From Setoptus koraiensis (Eukaryota; Animalia; Arthropoda): a stretch of 64,000 nucleotides of DNA. Location of the stretch: contig CM106585.1 of the NCBI GenBank assembly GCA_048013815.1, positions 23,312,001 through 23,376,000 on the forward strand, given 5' to 3'. The notes below the pieces were generated by a model that was not told where the DNA came from, made no database searches, and saw only the letters and a list, made by a program, of their open reading frames with translations. This document shows, one piece after another, positions 1,828 through 62,132 of the stretch. Position numbers and translations under genes: made by a program. The stretch's first letter is position 1, and every line of letters starts with the position of its first letter.

Positions 1828-1834
1828 TATAAAT
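1828..1834 (+). promoter_or_regulatory. Putative TATA box of the neprilysin-like gene
   Basis: TATAAAT 145 nt upstream of the ATG at 1973, with an Inr-like TCAT about 28 nt downstream. Confidence 0.4.
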
Positions 1835-1972
1835 AGGGCTGGCACCGGATTGGTGTCATCGAGTTAGATAAGTAGAACTTGTGAGTAAACTTCAAAAGAT
1901 TTACGAGGTCCCAACACGTCTTCCTTATCAAGTATCCAGTGCAAACCTATCAAAGAAAGAATTAACCCGAAA

Positions 1973-3812
1973 ATGAACAAAAAATCAGTTCAATCTTTAA
2001 GTTTTCTTGTAGTAACTCTTGCGTTCTCGAACCTCTTGCAGGGTATTTCAACAAGTCATGTAAACTCAGTGACACAGAAGAGCACCGCAAATCCTACTAC
2101 TTCTCGTGACACAAGAAGCAAACCAAATGACAACGTCTGTACAACCCCCAGTTGTGTCATGACAAGTAAGTATTCAGCACCCAAACATGCTAGCGACCCA
2201 ATCAATCAACATGTCAATATCACCGAAAAAATTGTTTTCTAAAATTCTCATCATGCACAAATCCCCCCAGCTGCTGAAATATTGAGGAACATGAATCAAA
2301 AAGTTGATCCCTGCAGCGACTTTTACGAGGTTAGTCTTATCTTAAAATTCAAAATAGTCAATGTCGGCGCATTACAACCCACTAACGTTTTCCTTTTAAA
2401 CAGTACGCGTGCGGGAATTGGCTCGAATCGCGGAAGTTGATTCCTTTCAATAATGGATTAGACGTGTTTACAGTAACTGCAAAAGATATAGACACACAGC
2501 TGCAACATCTTCTTGGCAGTGAATTGTCTAAACCTGATAGACCAGTTATTAAAAAAATGAAGTCATTCTATGACAGCTGTGTAAATCACTGTGAGTAGAT
2601 CTGAGCGATTAAGTCTCGATTATAAAATGTCTATTTGAGCGCTTCACATTTAGCCCGGCAATTGATCTAGTTATTGTGCAAACTGATAATGGTCATTTAT
2701 CTGGTTGAATGATACAGAGGACTCACTTCGCTAATATGTTTTATTCTAATCTCTCCAATATTCCGTTTGCAGGGCACCTCGTTGAAGAGAACCCCCATCC
2801 TCGATGTTTAGGAGAAGTCAAAAAATATTTTGGAATACCATTGGCATCTTTGTATGTCGAGAAAGTGGTAGACTCGGAAAATGTGAGACGCGTGGACATA
2901 ATGGTCAAGTATGTTAGGAAAGGCTTATTTAAAGTGCTGGAAGAAGCTGACTGGCTGGACAGCAAAACACGAGATGTCGCCCGAATTCGGGCGGAAAATA
3001 TTAAGCAAATTGTTGGATATCCAAAAGAACTGCTCGACTACAGTGAAATCGAAAAGATATACGAAGATCTAGAAATGTCCGAAAGAGATTACGCAAAAAA
3101 TCTAGTCACTCTGGGAAAATCTCACATTTTGAGAAGGATAGAACAAAATCGAGGAAGACGTGAAGTGCGCCCATTCTTTCTAGTAATAGAAGCCAGCCCT
3201 TGGTCATTTAAAACCTTATTCATAATACCTGCAGCGGTTATGCAAAATTGGTTCTACGACAAAGATCGCCCAAGCTATATAAATTATGGCTCAATGGGTT
3301 ATACAATAGGCCATGAGTTGACGCATGGCTTCGATGCAGAGCATGATCTCTATGGCAAATTCAATGGCACGAAGGATCGATTAACGGTGGACAGTCTGGC
3401 GGAGTTCCGTAGTCGTCGTCAATGTCTTATAGATCAGTACAGCAATTGCACTGAACCTGTATCGAATCTAAAAGTAAATGGCACAAAAACAATCCGTGAG
3501 AATATCGCGGATCAAGGCGGTTTAAAATCCGCCTATAATGCATACAATATCTGGAGCGAAGAAAATGGCGAGGAACCAACTCTCCCCGCCCTAAATATGA
3601 CCAATCGTCAACTTTTTTGGCTAGCCGCGGCCAATGTTTGGTGCGGACAGTTCTCGCTAGCTGAAGCACAGAGAAGAATCAAAGATGTTGTACACAGTCC
3701 AAACAAATTTCGAGTCAACACCGCTTTCTCCAACATAGAAGAGTTCATCAATGACTATAACTGTCCCGCCAACTCCCCTATGAATGCGACCATCAAATGC
3801 ACACTGTGGTGA
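1973..3812 (+). CDS. Secreted neprilysin-like M13 zinc metallopeptidase, internally shortened (~492 aa)
   Basis: Exons 1973-2165, 2271-2329, 2404-2590, 2773-3812, all GT..AG and frame-consistent (1479 nt). N-terminal hydrophobic signal-like segment. M13 motifs present: VCTTPSCV, VDPCSDFYEYACGNW, FYDSC, GHELTHGFD (HExxH), ENIADQGG, HSPNKFRV and C-terminal CTLW. Confidence 0.9.
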
Positions 3813-3901
3813 TCTTTTAAATTTCAAACTCCCATGGAGTAACGAATTGCAACTGGAAAGGAGTTCTTGCAGAGCCTCGAGCAATTAGATTCTCGTCAGA
3901 G

Positions 3902-4032
3902 GCATCTGACATAATATTCACGACGTGTTTCACCGGATCACCGATGGCAAGAATCAGTTCTTTCACTGACACATTGATTATCAACTCGTGTGCAGACTCA
4001 ACATTTTTCCTCTACCATCTGTTAATACATTA
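3902..4032. repeat. Third, more diverged fragment of the 'A' duplication family (homologous to 503-622)
   Basis: Shared colinear blocks gcatctgacat(a/g)atattcacg, attatcaact, gactc and ccatctgttaatacatta. Confidence 0.8.
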
Positions 4033-4050
4033 CATGTGATAAGAATAAAC

Positions 4051-4887
4051 AAGTCATGTTAGTTAATGCACTGCTAACCTGTGACCAAGCGACTTCTTGA
4101 TAACTTTATGATAACACGCAATTAAGACTATTCAATATTTATTATTATTGACTTGCAGCCTCAACTAACGCTAGCCCAATGGTGTGTCCACAGTAGCAAG
4201 ATGTTGTTCGTATTGCAACATTTATCCAAGTGTTGGCTTCATCGAATGCGTCGAGTTGAACGAGGCCAACAACGTGCACTAGCATGCAGTCTAGATTGAG
4301 TTCGTTGGTTAAAAGAGTAGCTTGTATATTTGCATATCCATATGCTCTTACATTAGTTAGAGGCTTCCTTGGCTGATTGTGAGCATAACAACTGAAGTCA
4401 AACTTTATGAGTTTTAACTTTCTTGGTTCTTTGTGAAGCCAGCTCATAGATTTCTGTTGATAATCGGACAATGGCGATGGAAATCACCACATAATGTTTC
4501 CTCAACGAGTTGTTTCAAACAATTGTGTGTCCGTTACAGATAGTCACAATAGACGCACATAGCAAACGACAGTTGGGCCCAAATTGGTGTCAATTCTAAG
4601 TATAAATGTATTGAGTGATATATTGAGTGTGACCCCATGAGTGAAGTGTGAACGATATGGATGACAACTATTCAATGCCACTCAATCAGATCTCATCACA
4701 TGCCATGATCCCTGTTATTTTGCAAAGCGACAGACATTCAAACGAGCGCAGCAATTTGTTGTAGATCTAATTGAAAGGTATAACTGAGATACCGCTAAAG
4801 TTGCGATCAAACATAATCGATCTAAACAAGCTGACAGGTGATTATGCTAAAATTTGTGACAGGAAAGAATTGAATGCAACAAAACAT
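4051..4887 (+). pseudogene. Internally deleted duplicate of the Corin-like upstream region and exon 1 (source 7415-9207)
   Basis: Colinear blocks match 7415-8369 with many substitutions and deletions. Then 4694-4887 is nearly identical to 9000-9207 apart from one short indel and one substitution. The first ATG is mutated (gtgatgtgt to gtgaagtgt) and the reading frame is shifted and stopped. Confidence 0.9.
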
Positions 4888-5087
4888 CATGCCAAGTTGG
4901 TCAACGTGTTTATTGCACGAAGAGAGAACGGGCTTATGTCGTTCACTTTAGTGGCGTCTTTATAAGGGGCCGGTCATCTGGCAAGACAAATATCACTTGC
5001 TTGTTAGTTGATATTGATACTTAACTTGTTGCCGTGCGAGATGATACGACGCACTACAACCAGTCTTTCCTAGACGTTGTAAATTTA

Positions 5088-5426
5088 TCAAAACCAAAAC
5101 TTTTCCTTGGGGCAAGGACCTCTGCTTGCTTTAGTCAGTTTGTCTGCAACCCGAAAACATTTAGTATCCTCGACCATGGAACCGCCTTCATCTGGACCAA
5201 GGGGCCTTTTGCAGGACAGCACTGTATGGCACGCTAACTCAACATCCAGTCCGCCTATCGTTTTATCGTTTCCACATCTATCACAAAAATTTTTCCAGGC
5301 TCGAATCTCATTCTTATCATTTGCATTACGTATTGCCGCGTTCCACTCTCTCTGGTTCCCTGTTCGCTTGCATTGTACAACCACCAACAGTAGAATGGCA
5401 CAAAAAAAGATTATTTGATGCTTCAT
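5088..5426 (-). CDS. Small secreted cysteine-rich protein, unknown family (112 aa)
   Basis: ATG-initiated intronless ORF. Signal-peptide-like MKHQIIFFCAILLLVVVQC, then six further Cys. A-rich context before the ATG and an AATAAA on the minus strand at 4909-4914. Confidence 0.7.
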   Translation of the reverse strand: MKHQIIFFCAILLLVVVQCKRTGNQREWNAAIRNANDKNEIRAWKNFCDRCGNDKTIGGLDVELACHTVLSCKRPLGPDEGGSMVEDTKCFRVADKLTKASRGPCPKEKFWF

Positions 5427-5523: not shown

Positions 5524-6084
5524 TTCAGTGACGTCTACAATGTCTTTTGATTTACTATCGGCGAGTTACAGTCATCTTGAATCACAATCCATCTTGTAGG
5601 ATCTATTCAAGGTGGGAAATCGACAAGAAATCGGAGAAATCTAGTGCTAAAAATCGCTCCATGATCGCCGTCTGATTTGATAGCATAAATTTGAAAGCTG
5701 ATCAAAGGTAAAATGGCTGAAGCAAACTATTCTCTAGATCTATTTTCTAGATCCAGTTATCCATGTGAGCGCTGCTTTGGAATTTAAAACCGCTCCCATG
5801 AGCTCCTTGATTGCTTTCTGTTATTCATCTTCAATTGAAGCTGAGAGTGCATTTCTGATGGTCTAGTCAGAATGAAAAAACGGATTCACCGACAGAAACG
5901 CAGTCATTGCTCTATGGTGTATGCTCAATCGGATAAATGAAATTTCATTGATATTGACGAGTGCAGTTTTTAACGGACTTTCGTCTGGCCAATTTTGAGT
6001 CGCTTCATCCTCTTATTCTAGTTGGCGGCATCTGACATGACATTCACGGCGAGTTTCGTTGCCGAGTACCAGGATCAAATTTGC
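5524..6084. repeat. Local segmental duplication, copy A2 (direct repeat of 1-559)
   Basis: Colinear match to 1-559. The minus strand carries a long, stop-interrupted coding-like frame that continues to about 6420. Confidence 0.95.
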
Positions 6085-8319
6085 CATGAGTTGTTTGAAC
6101 TTGCAAGATCGACTCTTCCTCATGCCTAGGGAGAGCAGAATCTGTTGCAAACTAAGATGTTTCTTGATATGAAAAAACTCTTAAGCTTCGTCCGTAGGCC
6201 AAACCTGCATGGGCAGATCTATTTATATTCACTGCTAACACCGAAATTTCGTCATGAGAGGCCCAAAATAGAGAATGCCTCCAACGGAATATCGCTGAAG
6301 AACGACGATTCATGATTTTTTGAATTTCGTGTCACGAGAAAGCTGAAAAATGTGAAGTTTGGATCCCACCAAAACCGATTTTGTTCGCCTCAGTGATAAT
6401 AATTCACGCAACAAAACCAACCTGAGCAAATACTAGACGTCGGCGATCATCTATGAATTTATTTATGAAGCTTATTCTACTGTTGCGACCGCTTTCCAGT
6501 GGCTGACTGAATAGTTTATGCGGATAATGACAACGCAAACAGTGGTGAATAACGCCACCAAGAGCATATCCGCTTGTTTGGCCGCCGAAAATAATTGGCA
6601 ACCATTCGGCAACTGTTAAACAATGCTCGAAGCAGTAGCGTTCGTGTCCAATGAATAATATATATAATGAGTTCCAATATAAAGTATCTGTTGTACTCTT
6701 TGTTTGTTGTTATTCGCCCACATACAGTGCATGCAGAAATATCTGGAAATATCTGGATTGAGAGCATATTACTATCTTATATATTGAGCAATATATTAAC
6801 TAGCGCAGTATTTGTCGGTAGTTAACTAGTATTCGGTCATGCAACCAGCAACAACAACCAACGGTTGGCAGCAAAACAAAAGTCGCACCCACAACCAGAG
6901 CGGACGTGCCCGCCGACAGCGTTGATGCGTTATACTGTTATTATTACATTAGGCATCACGTATCGGTTGCTAGCTAGGCACAGTTGTTGTGGCGACTGTT
7001 AGCGGGCCCCAGTTGGAGAGTGATAGTATAAACAACTATATTAAATAATATCAAGTGATGGCGTGAGCGTTCACACACATCGAGCTAGGTGAATGGCGGC
7101 CGAGCGGTTGCTAGTTGCCAATGGCGATTGGATGCGGATTTTCAGCATCTGTATCAGTTTCATTTTAGGTGTAAGTGTGAGTTTCACTTTGAGAAATAGT
7201 AATAACACAATTGCTAGATACACACAAACAATAACAATATATATTGGCAATAATATCTTCAACGTGCTCGCAATTCCTGATACAACCAACAACAACAGAC
7301 AACAGCATCATATAGCGACAGAGGGGAACGTTGCCAATGGTGCCATCAGCCAATGGCCAACTCGCCATCTAGCTGTCCCAATATGTCTATTGGGTCTATC
7401 AAGTGAATTATAGAAAGTCATGTCTAGCTGCTGCTCTGCTAACCTGCCACCAAGCGACCTCTAGATAACTCAATGATGGCACGCAAATAAAATTATCAGA
7501 CATTTATTATTATTGACTTGTGGCGATATTTGGCGCCTCAACTGACAGTGGGCCAATGGTGCGTCGACGCTGCCAAGACGCTGCTGCTGTCATAACATTT
7601 GTCGGTGGGCCTCGAATGGCTTCGAATCGTTGCCAGTGTTGGCCTTTGCGAATAAAGTTGGTTTGCAGTGAACAAGCAGCAAGTTAAACGAGGCCAACAA
7701 CGCGCATGAACACGCAGCCTAAATTGAGTTTGTTGGTCGAAAGAGTTGCCCGTGTGTCCGATGTTTGTATATCCATATGCTTATATGTGTTTGAGCATGC
7801 CTGTAGCCGCGTTATTACTGCGTGTTATTATTATATAATAAATTACGCAATAGTATAAATAACTATGGTGACACGTGTTCGAAGTGTGGTGCGATATGAG
7901 TCCAGTTGGCAATCACGTTATACGTGTATATACATCTCTATGTGCATATGGATATATATATATATGGATATGGATATGGATATATAAATATATATGGATA
8001 TGGATTCGCGCCCCCGACAAGAATATGCACTTGAGTTAGTTGGTGGCTCGCTTGCGATGCACTAACAACCAAAGTCAAACTTTATGAGTCTTAACGTTCT
8101 TCGTGAGGCCAGCTTATCGATTTCTGTTCGTGATCATAGATTCACAGACAAGAGCGATACAGACAATTGTAATCACTACATAATGTTGCCACAGCCAGTT
8201 GTGTGTCCGTCACTGATAGCCACAATAGACTCATACAGCGAGTGACAATTGGGCCCAAATTGGTGCCAATTCTAAGTATAAATGTATTGAGTGATACATT
8301 GAGTGTGACCCCACGAGTG

Positions 8320-11300
8320 ATGTGTGAACTGAACAATATGGATGATAATTATTTGATGCCATTCAATCACTGTTACACTCCAATATCTATAGATCAGGCG
8401 CATATTGCCCACCAACAACAACTAGCCGCATCGAACGATCAAGATGACAGGAACAATAGTCCAAATGTCGTTTCATTAGATTCTGGACTTGTCAACGATT
8501 ATGATGATTACGATGAGCATTGCGGATGCGAACAACACAGTCCAGTTAGCTCGAAAGATGGTCAATTTTATAATGCTTATCAACAACAACAGCAACAACA
8601 GCATGATATTTGCAGAATAGATCATTGTTCTTTGACGAGAACACCATCAGCATCATGGTCGTCGTCATCCTCGTGCTCGCCATCAACATCGGCAACGACA
8701 ACATCGATGGGAGCATCAACATCTTCGACAGTAGTTACGTCATCTAGTGTGTCTTGCAATTGTAAAACTTCTTGTCATAACAACAACAACAGCAACAACA
8801 ACAAACTGAGCATGACATCATTGCCGGATAAATTCAATCGGTCGGCATGTCAAGAAGATTACTTTTTACGGTTAGACGGCGCTAAACAACAGCGAAAGCG
8901 CAACGGTCAGAGATACCAGCAACAAAAACACAAGCGAAGCAAACAACAACGAGATGGTAGATTGCTGAAATCATGGCAAAAATCTTGTGAAGATGCTCCC
9001 ATCACATGCCATGATCCCTGTTATTTTGCAAAGCGACAGACATTCAAACGAGCGCAGCAATTTGTTGTAGATCTAATTGAAAATTCAATCAATGAAGCTA
9101 TAACTGAGATACCGCTAAAGTTACGATCAAACATAATCGATCTAAACAAGCTGACAGGTGATTATGCTAAAATTTGTGACAGGAAAGAATTGAATGCAAC
9201 AAAACATGAAGAAGAAGAAGAAGTAAAAGACCAAGAACAATCTCAACAGATTAATATCAATATCATGCCTTATGAAGAGCAGCGTTTCGATGAGCAACGT
9301 CTCAGTGATTTACGTCTAAAACAACAAAATCAGCAACTAGGGATAAAATTGCGCCATAATGAACTACAAATGATCGAAGAATTGGAGGAGCCAGCATCAG
9401 ATATGGAGCGGCTGAATCGAGTTGACAGTAGAAATAATAAAATGAGTTATATTAAGAAGAACAGTATCACTCTATATAAAGATAAAAACAATAGTTCGAC
9501 AACATCAATCAAATGTCACACTACTATCAGTCATCCGATTATATCAACAAGTCTAGAGAACAAACAAGATGAACGCAATGCTGCAAGCATATGTGAACGA
9601 ATATTAACAACTATGAAAAATAATGTAATTATATCATTGACATCGTGTTATATATTATTAGCATTGTTGATAGCCGTCATATTTGTTTATCCCTACATGT
9701 TGAGATGTTGGAGAAATGTTAAAATAGAGAAATCATTTCATTTGAGTGAAACTAGCTCTTCAACCACCACTGATAGTGAAACTATTTTAACTAATATGGA
9801 GTTTATGAATGTTGATGATAAATTAGTAAAGCAGAGCAAATTGTTGAAAGACAAAAGTGCCACCAATGATAAGAGTTTGGTTGCTGCTGAAAAGAGGCCA
9901 ATATTGCAAATAAGGGTGGATACTTTCAGTGCAGAACTTAACAATGATTATGATAAGGACAATAACTCAAATAGATGGAAATACAATAATACTGATTATA
10001 CCAAGAATAAGTCGGTCAGTGATGAGCATGTTGCAGAGTCAATGATTAACCAATTAATTGATGATAAAAACAAAAATAACTGGTCAAGTTCGGAGTTGTT
10101 GAATTTAGTCACAACAGCAACAACAAGTCAGGCGAAAAAAGTGTTATTTGTCGACAATAATAGTTCATTAACGGATGACATCAATGAAGATAATGAAACG
10201 ACAACTCTCTTGATTGACTTAGGACTTGACTTTGATCCAGACGCAATAACTGATGGTGGCGACAAATATAATGACATCAGCAGTGATTATGAACACGATG
10301 AAAACAATCGTATCAACAACAGACCAATCAGTGAAAAACTTTTGTCATCGACAACAAACGAGGCAGTAATGCCACCAGACTTGGACAGCTCAATGGTGAC
10401 TATGGCGACCCCATTGCCAACTACTTCAAACTACAACAGTATCAATAAAACTGGCAAAGCTGCATTGTTTTCATCATCATCGCCTGCCACTACAAATAAC
10501 AATGATTCCATGATAATTCCGTTAGCCCAAAAAAATGTCACCGGCGGCACAATGCTGCAAACTGCAACGCCACAAAAACAAATTAAATCATCTTTGGATA
10601 AAGATGATGAATGTCAGCCATTGACTGTGCATTTTTGTCAAACTTTCAATAATCCGCTCGGCGGTCGTGGTGTCACCTATGATCAAGTACTGCTACCTAA
10701 CAGATTTAATCAAAAGAAACAATCTATAATTGAGATAGTTTTAAGCAAATATGAGCCCATTATTGACATTAAATGCTTTCCATTGATGCCACTATTTCTT
10801 TGTTCTATTTATGTACCGAAATGTATTAAAACAAAGAAACCAGTCCTGCCATTACAACAAACAACAACGCCATCTCGTAATTTGCGTGATCATTTTGAAA
10901 CGGGTCCTCCTAATAATTCTAGTTTATTTCTAGCCAATTGGAATGTCTCGCCAGTGAGGCGCACACCTACGCTTGCAGTCAATTCAGCGACAACCAAGAC
11001 ATCTTATTCCACCACAACAAGTGCAACTGTTACTGCCACCACAGCTGACTCTGTTATCGACGTTGTTACGAACAGTGCAAATAGAAAAAGACGGAAAAAA
11101 CGACATCATTCTGAAAAAATTGCAACACACCACAAAGGATATTCTCGAACAGTAATAGATAACATATCAAATATTTTGATATCAACAATTTTCAAGCACC
11201 AACAGAAATACAATGATACATCGAATGAATCAAAACATCGAGACAACAATTTAGTACGAACTGATGCTGTCATCCGAGAAAATTCAAATGAACCAACTTA

Positions 11301-14300
11301 TGACAACAATGTGTCATCTCGGACTTTTGCATCGGCCAATAACAACAATGGCGCCGGCAATAACAATGCGGATGTTGATATTACGAACGGAAGTCAGCTC
11401 AAGTCGAGCACATATTCCGTACGTGCTGTTCCGCCATGCAGAAGTTTCTGTAGAGGTAAATATTAATAGGTGATATTATCACCGTTTTCAGTATGAAATG
11501 TCCACTGATGACTTTCAACTTGGTTGCAATAGGCCCCTTATACAGATATATAACGAGTAGTAACAATCTGAGAATCATCGTACATGAAATTTCTATTATA
11601 TAATCTCTACTCTTATTTTCACCCCTACTCCAATTTGAATCCTGCAGAGGCATTCAGAAAGTGTACATTCTTCTTTGAAGTTCTGTCGCTGACAGTTTTA
11701 GATCCCAAAGATTGCGACCAGTATCCCGATTCGCCTGACCCAGACATATGTATCGGATATAAAGAGCATGCTCAATTTCACCAATTAGAACTGAACCAAG
11801 GTGAGTAACACAGTAAACACCTAACTATGCGCCATGTTTGCATAATAGCAAGCAAACAAACAAGAATTTTGTCACCTAGAAAACAAATGAGAACATGAGT
11901 GAAAAATTTCAAAAAATGAGCCAACTTGCACCGAAAATTTTCTAGCATTACCATATTGCGGTAGATTGAAGACCATGTCGACATGAAATTCTGGGATAAT
12001 AGTAAAGAAGGTGCAGTCGCGTGTTTAAGTATTATATTGTCATTCATTCTCTAAAGAAAACATTTCGAAAACTCCAAAGAAATGATTATCCCTAAAACGA
12101 GGCATATCTGCCCTAGAGAATGATAGTCAGATAATTAGATTCGTTGACCTAATAAATGTGACCATTCCAATTGTTGTAAAATTGAATTAATATGCAAATA
12201 CAGGTTGCTCGGAGGACAAGTTCAAATGTACTGATGGCCGTTGCATACCGAAAAAATGGCGTTGTGATGGATTTGTTGATTGCACCGACAAAAGTGATGA
12301 AGAAAATTGCAACAATTGTGTAGGTGAAAATCAATTCTATTGCGGATCGGACAGTTGTATTAGCAAACGTTTAGTGTGCAATGGAGTCATTGATTGTCCG
12401 GATGGCAGAGATGAACGGCAATGTTGTGAGTATAAGACCACTGTATATCATAACTTTAGTTAGCTAGATAAAAACATTTGCAACACAAGCATCGTGGGTA
12501 TGCAAACTACAATCAACTGTCAACACCAACTTAACACTTGACTTCTCGCCTTACAATTCATAATTGATGGACCCCAGTGAGATTATCTCACGTTTCCGGT
12601 ACACCCAAGTACAGTGGACAAGGCCAGTTAGAGGTGTGGAGTGCACAAAACAATATTTGGAACCCCGTATGCGGGGTGCATTGGTCACCTGTACCGATGT
12701 CGCATCAAGCTTGCCGCATGCTCGGCTATAGTCGCGCCAATGAGACCCTCATCAGATATGGGCCCCTGCAAAAGATTGATTATTCGTCTATTGGCGATGC
12801 AACTGTTACTATATCTAACAACAACAAATTGGCTCATCATCAACAGCAGCAGCAGCACAAAACAGAGAGAACGAGTTTGTTGCATGGTGAAACGAACAAA
12901 CAACAACAAATGAGACTTAGACAGCGATACAATAATAACAGTGAAACAACATCAATTATTGACGCAAAGAGACTGCTGATTAATTTCACTACATTGTCGC
13001 CCACAAGCGAGATCGCATCATCATTTCAATCTAGTGACGACATGGATCTGGATGACTATGTTAATGATGATAAGCCCACGCACTCACAAACAAATAGATT
13101 GCGTCACGATCATCATGTCACCTATGAGAGACGTCCCATTGTTGCAAATGTCACCAACAACAAACAACATCCAGAGACTAAATTGAGCGACCGTTTAACA
13201 AATCACTCGTCACTCATTCATGGCAACACAAAATCACTGCTAGCAACGAATCATCATGACCTAACGGATAAATCAATCAGGAGACTGAATAAACTGAGTC
13301 GAATTAAGCGTTACAATTACATGTTTCCATCAGGCAACAACAACAACAAGGAACAAGAAGCGGAAGTTAGTTCACTCGTGAATAATCACGGCGTTACCTT
13401 AGAGGCCATGAGGGACATGGTGGGCAATGAACAGAAATGGTTCAAATCGTTGAGCAGTATGCTGTATCACGGTGCCACCATTGGCTGTCAGGGTAGACGG
13501 CTCGAGGAGCAATCGGCAGTTCTTATTCAATGCGAAAACTTTCAATGTGGTCGCTCTGTAATTAGTTATACGTCGCGTTACCATCATTCAATTCCTTCCC
13601 ATATGGACCAGCAACAGCAGCCCATTTCAGATAATACAAGCACATTTGTCAAAGTGACCACATCAGATCGCCATATGGCACGCTCTATTATGGTCGCTGA
13701 TGGTAACAAAGACGCCGGTCAAATGACCCTCGCTGACAATTATGATGATGATGATACCGCCAATAATGATACCGATGCCACTGATGATTACGACCATTCC
13801 GATATTCAATCTGAGCTGGAATTGTCACAACAACACCAACAACAGCAGCAGCTGTTTAGCTCAAACTCAGTTTCGTCACGATTTGTTGTCGGAGGCATCG
13901 AGAGTCTACCTGGCGAATTTCCTTACCTGGGCGCGTTGCATGGCGGCCCGGACGAGGTGTTCTTTTGTGGAGGTGTGTTGATTAGTGCAAATTGGCTATT
14001 GACAGCGGCGCATTGTGTCGGTAATCGTACTCAACCTAACGGATGGATGGTTAAAGTTGGCGTTACGCGTCGCACAGCTTCGCCATCGTTTGTTAGAAAA
14101 CTGAAAGTGAGAAAAATAATCAAACATCCAAACTTTAATCGTGTCTCTCTATTCAACAATGACATTGCATTGTTACTTTTAGAGGAAAGTGTTGAATTTC
14201 ATCAATATCTTAGACCAATATGCTTGCCTAGACCCAATATAGTTTTAGGTCCGGATAACAGCAACGATTGTGTTGTTGTGGGGTTTGGTAAGTCCCGGTA

Positions 14301-14910
14301 CAGTCAGGAGGCCGATTATTTGCATGTGGCACATTTTGCCAAAGTTCCAATTGTAAAGCATTCAATTTGTTCAAAATGGTACGGAGATCAAGATTTCTAT
14401 CTCACTAAGGGCATGCTATGCGCCGGCTATGCAGAGGGTAAATTGGACGCTTGCCAGGTAAGCAATAACGTATTATTTGACGTTCGTTGTTATCGTCTCA
14501 TATCAGTGTGTTTGGTGTTTACCCGAAGGCTCTAATTAACCGTTCTGCTCGACTTTTATTCCAATGAACGAAAATAATTCATCAAATACTCGCTGATCTA
14601 TCAACGACGGTCGACACGAAAACTAACAGGGCGATTCGGGATCAGGATTGTTTTGTCGATTGTCAAACAAGAATCAATATTTTGTTGTTGGTGTTGTCAG
14701 TTTTGGCATTAAGTGTGCCACACCTAAACTGCCAGGTAACTAATTGAATCCGTCCGAAAATCCTACCCTTACTAAGAATTCCACTTCAACCAAATCGACA
14801 CAAAAATAACGTTTGTGTTTTTTACCAATTCAATAGGTGTTTATACCTCTGTGCCAATGTACGTCGATTGGATTAAGTCTACAACGAGAGAATATGGTTT
14901 TCCGATTTGA
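8320..14910 (+). CDS. Corin: Corin-like type II transmembrane serine protease (TM - Frizzled CRD - 2x LDLa - SRCR-like - trypsin domain), ~1856 aa
   Basis: Exons 8320-11455, 11648-11800, 12204-12425, 12578-14457, 14630-14735, 14837-14910, all GT..AG (5571 nt, in frame). TM segment [28 protein letters not shown] motifs [14 protein letters not shown] and VPPCRSFC. Two LDLa repeats (CSEDKFKC...SDEENC; C...DGRDERQC). Catalytic triad in LTAAHC, NDIALL and DACQGDSGSG. The ORF track starts at a GTG (8203); the first ATG is at 8320. Confidence 0.92.
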
Positions 14911-59100: not shown

Positions 59101-61351
59101 ACAGCAACATTTATGCAAATAATGAGCATGCCGTGCTAATTAATAAAGTTGCACACTTAATTTGTTTATTTTAATTTAGTGCAATTTGGTCGACAGAGAA
59201 GAACGCTCTCGGAGGTGGCCCCAAAATAAAGAAGCGTCTGTTGTGTTTGTTTAAAAGTGTTTGTCAGCAGCACTTCCTAGACGACAAACGAGCGTAGTAT
59301 TGCACACACACACACACGCACACACAATTGAGAGTTGATTGGACACGTCAAAACTCGAGCAAAAGATTCAATGTTGTTGTGTTGCTTTCATAAATTTCAA
59401 TTGTGCTACTATACTTAATGGGGTCAGCTGGGCGACATTGTTCTTGTTGGCGAGCCAAAAAGCCATAGGAGAGAGGATAAATTGTTAGATTTAACAGCAA
59501 CTTTTCGGTCACTTTTCAAAGCGAGCTGCTCGTTCGTCTACAGCCGGTTGGCACTGGCATCAGACAGCAAGAAACATTGAAAGAGTCGTTGTTGTTGTCG
59601 TTGTATCATACATCATAGTGTCAGTCCGTGCTTGTATTTATACGAATATCTTCATCGTATGAATGTTGTTATATTTATATGTGTAATGTCCATATAAATG
59701 TTGCGCTAGTAAGTGAGCGAGCGAGCGAGAAAAGAATGTCCTGTTGCGATGTTATAAAAGCGGAAAGAGATTGAGGAAAGAGACGTCGTTGATGAGGAAC
59801 AACAACAATGCTGCAACTGTGACTACAATGATGATGGCAACAAAAGACAACAGACTCACTTCCTTCATTTTAGCCATGTGTTATAATTATGTCATGATGT
59901 AACGTGATGTGATTTAACCATGCTGACCATCTGCTTGCGTAACAGCGCCCAATGCTCATCGAGGCAACTGCCGGCCAACTGACTGGACAACAACAACACA
60001 AAATTAACGGTATATTATTGATGCACAATGCAAAATTATGTGTGTGTAATTGTACGATTATCTGTCTGTTGTAATTGCTCATATGTATGGCGACTTACAA
60101 CTATTTTCCAGCTCATATTAAACTACAACTTACCGTGCTTATGTAGTGGTAGTAGTTTAATATGAGCATAACCTTGATAGATACGCCGATATACAATATA
60201 AAGAATTACAAATATAAAGAAAGAAAGTGTTTGTTTGGCATTCATTCAGCAAATAAAACAACTCTGACTGCAACCTGATCGAATTCAGTTCAATCGATGT
60301 AATCGGCTGGTAAAGATGAGAATTACAGCAATCAAATTGAGTCAAATGGTCCACTTGAGCGCAACTCATCATCACTTAACTGTACATATTTGATGGTAGA
60401 TGGAATAGGAAACTTATGTTAGATTTCACTGTCATTATTGTTCGAGCATGCGGATATATTAAATTCAGTACCATTTCATATTCATTCATTGTTCACCGTT
60501 ACTCAATACATTACTAATATTTACTTGTAATAACAACTCTGCCAGATCCAATCAGACCAAACCAATTGCCCACCAATATATTTATATATACAGCTTAACA
60601 CCACCTGTCGCCAAGCAAACACGGTCAAAGTTCAACATAACATTTTGAATCATCTAATTCAGTCTAACATCTTGCACCAATCGCTTGCAGCTACATGATA
60701 AGTTAGTCTAAATAGATACAAATTCAACCAAATTTATTTGGCGTTAAATTTCTACTTATTTCGCTCATTTCCAGATACCCATATTCTAAAGTTGTGAGGG
60801 TCTTTTCAGAGAGAGATTCACTATTTCTACACATATCTGAATCTCAATTCAACTCAATTCCTTCTCAATCTGTGGCTTTTGCAACTAAAACTCAACTCCA
60901 CTCGATAATAAGAAAAGTTGATAATCGTGCTCACTTAACGGTCGCTCAGTGATCACAGTCAGCATGTGTTTTGGCGATACATTGTAGATTGAGCGTTCGC
61001 ATAAACACAAAATAAGCCTCATCAGATAAGCACAAATACAATGGATAGTTCAATGGATTGTTCACTTGTTTGACAATGTGTCAGATCTTATACTTGAATC
61101 TTATATATATTTAAGGTGATTAGAGTGTGCAAATATACATGTGCGTGGCATGTATATATAAATACATTATTTTCATACTTGAAAAATATCCGATTCGAAA
61201 GTTCTAGTAAGTTTTGCTAAATGCCGGTGAGCCAGTAAGAGTTACAAACAAAGAAACTTAAATTGTGACCAAGTAGTCAACTCCCACTGATGGCCAACTA
61301 TTACGAAAATAACAAACTTTTCTTGTTGGAGAGGCGAGAAATTATACAGTT

Positions 61352-61851
61352 NNNNNNNNNNNNNNNNNNNNNNNNNNNNNNNNNNNNNNNNNNNNNNNNN
61401 NNNNNNNNNNNNNNNNNNNNNNNNNNNNNNNNNNNNNNNNNNNNNNNNNNNNNNNNNNNNNNNNNNNNNNNNNNNNNNNNNNNNNNNNNNNNNNNNNNNN
61501 NNNNNNNNNNNNNNNNNNNNNNNNNNNNNNNNNNNNNNNNNNNNNNNNNNNNNNNNNNNNNNNNNNNNNNNNNNNNNNNNNNNNNNNNNNNNNNNNNNNN
61601 NNNNNNNNNNNNNNNNNNNNNNNNNNNNNNNNNNNNNNNNNNNNNNNNNNNNNNNNNNNNNNNNNNNNNNNNNNNNNNNNNNNNNNNNNNNNNNNNNNNN
61701 NNNNNNNNNNNNNNNNNNNNNNNNNNNNNNNNNNNNNNNNNNNNNNNNNNNNNNNNNNNNNNNNNNNNNNNNNNNNNNNNNNNNNNNNNNNNNNNNNNNN
61801 NNNNNNNNNNNNNNNNNNNNNNNNNNNNNNNNNNNNNNNNNNNNNNNNNNN
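61352..61851. other. Scaffold gap of exactly 500 N
   Basis: A round-number N run, typical of a placeholder inserted during scaffolding. The ORFs listed across it are artefacts. Confidence 0.97.
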
Positions 61852-62132
61852 GGAAGATGCACTACCCATGCCCATGTACCAAACATTAGTGACGCTGTTG
61901 TATAAAACGAAGAAATTTCAAACACGTGTTGCCATTCTGACAGTCTTCCAGACAAAATCGTCAGACATCGATCAACAAAAGGAATTATTGAAAATTATTT
62001 GAGGTCCATTCAAGCACGAAATTGCCATCTTTTCTCCAAAATCATCACCTGACGCACTCACACATCCTATATGAGATCAGCATCAAGCAAAGTCAAACAA
62101 CGGTTAAAGTCAGTAAAGCAAACATTTTCATC

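Follow-up and report, generated by a model that had tools for sequence, protein, structure and literature searches.

A neprilysin-family (M13) peptidase gene of Setoptus koraiensis that appears to lack the distal lobe

Within a stretch of 64,000 nucleotides (nt) from the arthropod Setoptus koraiensis (GCA_048013815.1, contig CM106585.1, positions 23,312,001 to 23,376,000; hereafter "the window", numbered from its first letter) we analysed a four-exon gene at positions 1973-3812 of the forward strand. The gene encodes a peptidase of the M13 family, to which human neprilysin (NEP) belongs, and lacks a counterpart of the distal lobe that in NEP is bracketed by the disulfide cysteines 143 and 411. 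This "lidless" architecture is, as far as genomic sequence can tell, very probably real and not a product of assembly or annotation. The evidence tips slightly towards a reading of the gene as a member of a lineage-specific subfamily of secreted lidless M13 proteins, which would have arisen by an old deletion of the distal lobe and whose open cleft would act on larger or folded substrates. This reading rests on the profile coverage of the predicted protein, on the continuity of the locus in contigs from other samples, on the complete zinc site and on a diverged homologue with the same exon structure, which was recovered from a metagenome.

Gene model and the missing lobe

The gene model was read by eye and checked with a script. 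Its coding sequence has 1479 nt, i.e. 492 codons with no internal stops, in accordance with the ~490 amino acids (aa) of the original prediction. Exon 1 (1973-2165) contains the start codon, a signal-like N-terminus and the CTTPSC pair that is equivalent to NEP cysteines 57 and 62; it ends in phase 1 and is followed by a GTAAGT donor. The N-terminus is composed of MNKK, about 14 hydrophobic residues and LLQG, and, judged by eye, it resembles a cleavable signal peptide. Exon 2 (2271-2329; 59 nt, donor GTTAGT) encodes ...VDPCSDFYE, including the equivalent of NEP Cys80, and exon 3 (2404-2590; 187 nt, donor GTGAGT) extends from YACGNW to FYDSCVNH plus a terminal T, with the codon for the equivalent of NEP Cys143 at 2578-2580. 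Intron 3 (2591-2772, GTGAGT...TTTGCAG) occupies the place of the ~240 missing residues of the distal lobe. Exon 4 (2773-3812) then provides a 10-residue linker, Cys158 (2805-2807, the equivalent of NEP Cys411), the end of the M13_N domain, the whole Peptidase_M13 domain and the stop codon at 3810-3812. The three introns are 105, 74 and 182 nt long and their acceptors are all CAG, preceded by pyrimidine-rich tracts.

The splice that brings the two cysteines together, 2590^2773, had been proposed in the original prediction with only 14 residues between them. It was reproduced here with GTGAGT and CAG borders and an open frame, and gives ...FYDSC-VNHWHLVEENPHPR-CLGEVKKYFG..., in which Cys143 and Cys158 are separated by VNHW and HLVEENPHPR. 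Reading through intron 3 would encounter a TAG at 2594-2596 in the frame of exon 3; in the frame of exon 4, the TGA expected at 2706-2708 was found at this very position and closes that frame upstream.

Pfam profiles delimited the gap. Exon 3 matches Peptidase_M13_N (PF05649) over profile positions 8-69 of 381 (E 2.4e-09), and exon 4 matches the same profile over 308-381 before continuing into the catalytic Peptidase_M13 domain (PF01431; profile 12-204 of 205, 180.3 bits, the gathering cut-off being 24.5; E 4.9e-53), which places the gene in M13. Positions 70-307 of PF05649 (~240; human NEP about 147-400) have no counterpart, so the N-terminal domain is incomplete, and neither Pfam nor tblastn recovered sequence of the second lobe of the two-lobe M13 ectodomain. 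This coverage bears out the predicted loss of the central lobe between the equivalents of C143 and C411. Against PDB sequences, HMMER aligned exon 4 end to end with residues 335-670 of ECE-1 (E 8e-58) and with 356-696 of the NEP chain (E 3e-56), where its first Cys is aligned with chain residue 357, i.e. Cys411 with our own offset of +54 for the 696-residue crystal chain. The Cys of exon 3 is located in the invariant "xSC" column of an alignment of seven M13 sequences, a column which we take to be that of NEP Cys143 (YRSCIN). The second subdomain of NEP contains N144, N284, N324 and V399, and the two domains enclose a chamber with the catalytic machinery (PMC11700742, PMC4908401, PMC4121237). 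From the bracketing by Cys143 and Cys411 together with these published subdomain descriptions, the deleted stretch (NEP about 147-400) corresponds to the gating lobe.

One explanation of the gap would be an artefact of assembly or gene modelling: central exons might have been collapsed out, or might lie at a distance and be joined by long-range or alternative splicing. The sequencing runs found to match the locus include no RNA run, and the contigs of other samples available from Logan are short, none of them spanning the whole gene, which makes them weaker evidence than long reads. Nevertheless, these contigs (DNA-type assemblies of three samples, which belong to three studies) tile the gene including its introns, and the stretch from exon 3 through intron 3 into exon 4 is covered. 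One contig over 2553-2739 is identical to the window and two allelic contigs extend over 2743-2903, and in the contigs of all three samples no loose end, branch, joint or insertion was seen in intron 3 (none inside 2452-3419). Since the contigs are continuous across the intron, a collapsed insertion is unlikely; a check for such a collapse at 2591-2772 had been recommended with the original prediction, and the short contigs revealed no extra sequence there. Moreover, tblastn with 41 M13 proteins produced matches confined to ~2200-3809 of the window, and no coding for the central lobe was found in intron 3 or anywhere else in the 64 kb, with at least 7 of the 10 proteins scanned with Pfam carrying most or all of this lobe. 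A split gene, the lobe of which would be supplied by a neighbouring gene, was ruled out, as nothing else in the window is M13-like. Further against an artefact is the homologous locus described below, which comes from an independent assembly of another sample and has the same gap-free architecture. Finally, three control loci found in the same way (L003-L005) have normal central lobes, and the test therefore distinguishes lidless from normal loci. Altogether, an artefact appears highly improbable.

A diverged relative with the same architecture

Exon 4 was searched exhaustively against 1.84 billion representatives, and the best single-domain matches showed 37-42% identity. A lidless relative was identified as P0054 (336 aa, 42% identity), a protein called on L001, which is a 2206-nt metagenome contig from ENA with 41-43% identity to the window gene; the search for equally shortened relatives that had been proposed at the outset thus returned the same architecture. 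Exon 1 of L001 (61-241) has a signal-like start, CTTSRC and a phase 1 end; exon 2 (354-412, 59 nt, located by tblastn) ends in DPCEDFYQ; exon 3 (520-706, 187 nt) runs from YACGNW to FYAGCINEN, ends with T in phase 1 and has a GTAAGT donor. Exon 4 begins ...SHQC-IEMVKIRFSIPLASLFV, its acceptor being at 819 or 930, i.e. 113 or 224 nt past exon 3, and a gap of 113-224 nt is too short for the central lobe.

Exons 2 and 3 are of the same length in both loci (59 and 187 nt), and the loci also agree in phase and in a breakpoint just past xSC(V/I)N; it is by this combination that we propose to recognise a lidless subfamily. They also have in common the stretches IPLASL and QYSNxTEPxxxLxxNGTKT, which are not in the family consensus, and an intron between DFY(E/Q) and YACGNW, which is absent from the normal M13 array L003, where one high-scoring segment pair spans the site. 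The conserved disulfide cysteines are kept in L001/P0054 as in the window gene. The exon 4 product and P0054 were sisters in a tree of 85 C-terminal domains built by maximum likelihood, with a Shimodaira-Hasegawa-like approximate likelihood ratio test (SH-aLRT) value of 93; their branches measure 1.35 (window) and 1.26, the median being 0.84. Nei-Gojobori comparison of the two loci gave proportions of synonymous differences of 0.83 in exon 4 and 0.90 in exon 3, which are saturated, and proportions of non-synonymous differences of 0.40 and 0.45. The combination of saturated synonymous and unsaturated non-synonymous divergence indicates that the lidless form is old and under purifying selection, and the occurrence of the same architecture in a diverged, independent homologue points to a heritable and selected design.

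Alternatively, the lobe could have been lost independently at the two loci through recent recurrent deletions, and the shared architecture would then be uninformative on long-term function. The SH-aLRT value does not reach the 95 mark, and since both branches are long the sister placement may be inflated. Recurrent loss is nonetheless very hard to reconcile with the identical exon lengths, phases and breakpoint, with the clade-specific motifs, with the common intron that the normal M13 locus does not have and with non-synonymous divergence that is unsaturated while the synonymous one is saturated, and we give it very little credence; a single old deletion remains the preferred reading.

No other candidate showed this architecture. 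A word-index protein search with exon 4, in the range of 190-604 aa, returned 41 matches of up to 36% identity; ten of them, scanned with Pfam, were end-truncated fragments with the central lobe, and the rest had no internal deletion. Other short matches of the exhaustive search were nearly all end-truncated fragments of ordinary M13 proteins; P0072 and P0172 were rejected on account of unrelated or diverged N-termini, and P0163, P0186 and P0130 (loci L003-L005) proved to be ordinary M13 genes with central lobes. A scan of JGI metagenomes with the alignment of the two lidless sequences yielded no further relative, and an exact database look-up of the 367-aa open reading frame (ORF) gave no record. 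The nearest named M13 protein is neprilysin-2 of Tetranychus urticae (39% identity). Among 191 retrieved proteins the only other one with an internal M13_N deletion and its N-terminal part kept was P0101, a predicted "endothelin-converting enzyme 2-like" protein of Myxine glutinosa (578 aa). It differs from the window protein in that ~169 residues are deleted and ~90 remain between the two cysteines, and it has a membrane anchor and an unrelated sequence context; skipping of an exon in the prediction may explain it. Our literature searches, incomplete in coverage, turned up no M13 protein described as devoid of domain 2, which is weak evidence of novelty.

Several ordinary or uncertain M13 sequences were encountered along with these candidates. 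Locus L003 (GCA_028296485.1, JAPNUB010000004.1, 1003336-1015129), which belongs to another genome, comprises three or more ordinary multi-exon M13 genes in tandem; annotation has apparently split one of them into products of 236 and 342 aa. One contig each in runs X1 and X2 matches the window only over the stretches 2401-2431 (YACGNW) and 3628-3647 (VWC), 20-31 nt in length and in unrelated surroundings; the sequence that follows translates to KFRPEVLKLR, typical of ordinary M13, and probably belongs to another M13 paralogue of the same organism. Run X7 (organism C), labelled as a different organism, contains a 262-nt contig identical to window positions 3079-3340 and a 2478-nt contig whose matches to the window are limited to two conserved stretches, set 180 nt apart as they are in the window; the run might be contaminated or wrongly labelled, or might come from a close relative.

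Catalytic site, variation and activity of this copy

The catalytic machinery is preserved in sequence. HELTHGFD (3312-3335) contains the equivalents of the zinc ligands His583 and His587, of the catalytic Glu584 and of Asp590, each conserved in at least 79 of 83 homologues, and the alignment with these homologues also assigned the third zinc ligand Glu646 and Asp650 to ENIAD (3498-3512), and His711 and Arg717 to HSPNKFR (3693-3713). All eight residues are present in both the window gene and P0054, and those that define the M13 zinc and transition-state site (H583, E584, H587, E646, D650, H711 and R717) are each shared by at least 78 of the 83 homologues. The original prediction of intact HELTH, ENIAD and HSP with the following Arg was therefore upheld by the script and by the column check. 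It had also listed cysteines for the disulfides 57-62, 80-735, 88-695 and 621-747, all of which were found in conserved columns; together with the 143-411 pair, the cysteines at residues 56, 61, 79, 87, 143, 158, 364, 437, 477 and 489 are predicted to retain five conserved disulfide pairs. One extra, unpaired Cys372 is situated within an N-C-T sequon.

The predicted fold agrees with this assignment. An AlphaFold2 model of exon 4 alone had a mean predicted local distance difference test score of 84.4 and a predicted template modelling (TM) score of 0.83, and Foldseek placed it closest to human NEP (6sh1; TM 0.89, root-mean-square deviation 2.6 A), followed by ECE-1 (0.87) and bacterial PepO (0.81-0.83), as is expected of a NEP-like catalytic lobe. 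All matching M13 chains of this fold search in the PDB have 566-698 residues. The superposition on human NEP that had been advised initially was made for the exon 4 model.

Compared with human NEP/CD10 and ECE-1, the window gene encodes the same catalytic lobe (HExxH, ENIAD, HSP...R and D590) with the cysteines of the five disulfide pairs, and differs by the absence of ~240 residues (domain 2) between the equivalents of Cys143 and Cys411, by a predicted signal peptide in place of a type II anchor and by VIEASP in place of VNAFY. The lobe that is retained, domain 1 of NEP, is structurally related to thermolysin (PMC4121237). Once domain 2 is gone, the solvent-exposed cleft would resemble that of thermolysin (M4) in the way it works and not in membership, since by sequence, cysteine pattern and Pfam the gene is M13 and no M4 match was seen. 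Lineage-specific M13 paralogues with signal peptides and altered substrate-site residues are also represented by Drosophila Nepl15 and by the expansions of ticks (PMC7822871, PMC11752866). According to their descriptions, both lobes are present in these proteins and zinc ligands are lost from the inactive members, whereas in the window gene the zinc site is intact and the lobe is missing.

On these grounds we propose that an old deletion removed the distal lobe (domain 2, NEP about 147-400) exactly between the cysteines of the 143-411 disulfide. The remaining protein would consist of the N-terminal strap (NEP about 57-146), a loop of 14 residues that this disulfide probably holds together, the linker helices and, with its zinc site complete, a thermolysin-like catalytic lobe. 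Loss of the distal lobe would leave the cleft open, like that of thermolysin, and would abolish the filter that limits NEP to short peptides, and the protein would act extracellularly on larger or folded substrates. The peptide preference of NEP seems to be due to the enclosed chamber, closed by domain 2 (PMC4121237, PMC4908401), and, because the published structure ascribes the size limit to this domain, cleavage of larger substrates is a reasonable expectation. In this copy, the rewritten VNAFY docking strand may reduce activity. A more far-reaching proposal, and one that we consider less likely than not, is that of a family of secreted, single-lobe, open-cleft M13 proteinases with thermolysin-like action on folded proteins (those of a host or of prey, for instance, or those broken down in extra-oral digestion).

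A number of observations weigh against a functional enzyme at this locus, and they bear most directly on a further explanation, namely that the subfamily is real and this particular copy is inactive or decaying. Its product would then be secreted and serve for binding or as a decoy without enzymatic activity, or the gene would be on its way to becoming a pseudogene. The most prominent of them is the substrate-orienting motif (3183-3200), which reads VIEASP where M13 proteins have VNAFY or VNAYY, with Asn542 replaced by Glu and Tyr545 by Pro. In the VNAFY columns of the 83 homologues N, A and Y are present in 75, 77 and 78 sequences, respectively, and P0054/L001 keeps NAEY. The motif 541-VNAFY-545 orients the scissile bond, with Asn542 coordinating the substrate, and loss of Asn542 is otherwise found mainly in non-peptidase M13 homologues (PMC2259306). 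Since the strand is rewritten, substrate binding must differ from that in canonical M13 enzymes. The S2' residues R102 and R110 of NEP are not conserved in the window gene either, according to a hand alignment, and these positions are variable family-wide. Confidence of the exon 4 model falls below 50 at residues 122-145, which include the VNAFY strand, and at 190-200; the model and the Foldseek comparison cover the C-terminal 345 residues of the 492-aa protein. All sequencing runs that match the locus are of DNA type, with no RNA run among them, and both the 2590^2773 junction and expression of the gene are predictions from genomic sequence. The terminal branch of the window sequence is long, as given above.

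Polymorphism adds to this list. Alternative sequences cluster in two bubbles, 2434-2567 and 2743-2903, that flank the deletion joint. The first, in exon 3, has an alternative haplotype with 8 differences, of which the six listed are all non-synonymous (N101D, V105, F106L, E124D, P128T). The second, at the border of intron 3 and exon 4 and in the linker, comprises two haplotypes with 4 and 13 differences from the window in three samples; their depths sum to that of the flanks, and they are therefore most likely alleles. A smaller cluster lies at 3474-3486. The listed changes affect ~17 codons non-synonymously and 8 synonymously, a count of about 2:1 that is near the neutral expectation and excludes 11 further haplotype differences which were not listed. 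One haplotype of the second bubble, which accounts for 33-48% of depth in each of the three samples, carries a G>A change at 2773 that under the 2590^2773 splice turns Trp147 into TAG. Within-species constraint is weak and one haplotype is possibly null, and both weaken a functional reading of this copy.

Precedents for such a fate exist, since functional, secreted and catalytically dead M13 proteins are known, e.g. Drosophila Nepl15 (PMC7822871), and ticks have highly expressed, possibly inactive M13 homologues (PMC11752866). Opposed to it is the fact that all zinc ligands and catalytic residues are intact, unlike those of known dead M13 proteins. The frame of 492 codons is open and the sole indel is in frame: relative to the window allele, which has one additional Val before His711, the three other samples are 3 nt shorter at 3686. 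Variation clusters in the linker and one surface loop, and no differences were listed across 2874-3418. As for the 2773 G>A haplotype, the change also creates an AG at 2773-2774, which with a GTAAAT donor at 2581 would permit a putative in-frame junction 2580^2775; given this alternative, the haplotype need not be null. The linker of this haplotype, EEYSHLEC, resembles that of L001, ENYSHQC. All things considered, we regard an inactive or decaying copy as a minority explanation, albeit one to be taken seriously, and the reading of this copy as an active open-cleft protease, which is made by analogy with thermolysin and NEP, as possible at somewhat less than even chances.

Gene surroundings and meaning for the M13 family

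Upstream of the gene a candidate TATA box, TATAAATA, was read at 1828-1835 (forward strand), ~140 nt 5' of the ATG, and no upstream ATG is present within 1850-1972. A candidate polyadenylation signal, AATAAA, is located on the same strand at 4044-4049, 232 nt 3' of the stop codon.

Repeated blocks flank the gene and suggest either that a segment has been duplicated or that a repeat element is present: positions 1-559 recur at 5524-6084 (92-95% identity), and 3889-4346, just 3' of the gene, resembles 490-622 and 7425-7781 (74-90%). Short ORFs at 4771-4965 (forward strand) and 4544-4681 (reverse strand) repeat peptides of the long ORF 8203-11466 and of 8142-8336, so that a 5' fragment of the neighbouring gene has apparently been duplicated beside the neprilysin gene. 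The reverse strand carries at 5088-5426 an ORF of 112 aa with a signal-like start and several cysteines. Further downstream, 8203-14535 of the forward strand is occupied by two very long low-complexity ORFs rich in N, Q and S; the first has a Frizzled-like Cys-rich stretch and the second, 12577-14535, ends in what by eye is a trypsin-like serine protease domain, and together they may form a Corin-like gene. Elsewhere in the window a glycine/tyrosine- and serine-rich ORF resembles, by eye, arthropod cuticle proteins, and a conserved-looking Kelch-BTB ORF shows at most 30% identity to any database match. A run of N at ~61300-61880, i.e. an assembly gap, appears as X-filled ORFs, and the GC content of 60001-62000 is 0.26.

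Enzymes of the neprilysin family serve as drug targets, and engineered forms of them are under study as amyloid-degrading therapeutics. If the interpretation given here is true, the gene would offer a natural test of whether domain 2 alone sets the peptide-size limit of neprilysin. A stable, selected lidless M13 protein would also be a ready-made minimal scaffold with which to ask whether the catalytic lobe folds and works on its own and whether the size limit is then lifted. The gene also adds an unusual branch to the M13 expansions of mites and ticks, which are large and so far little understood.

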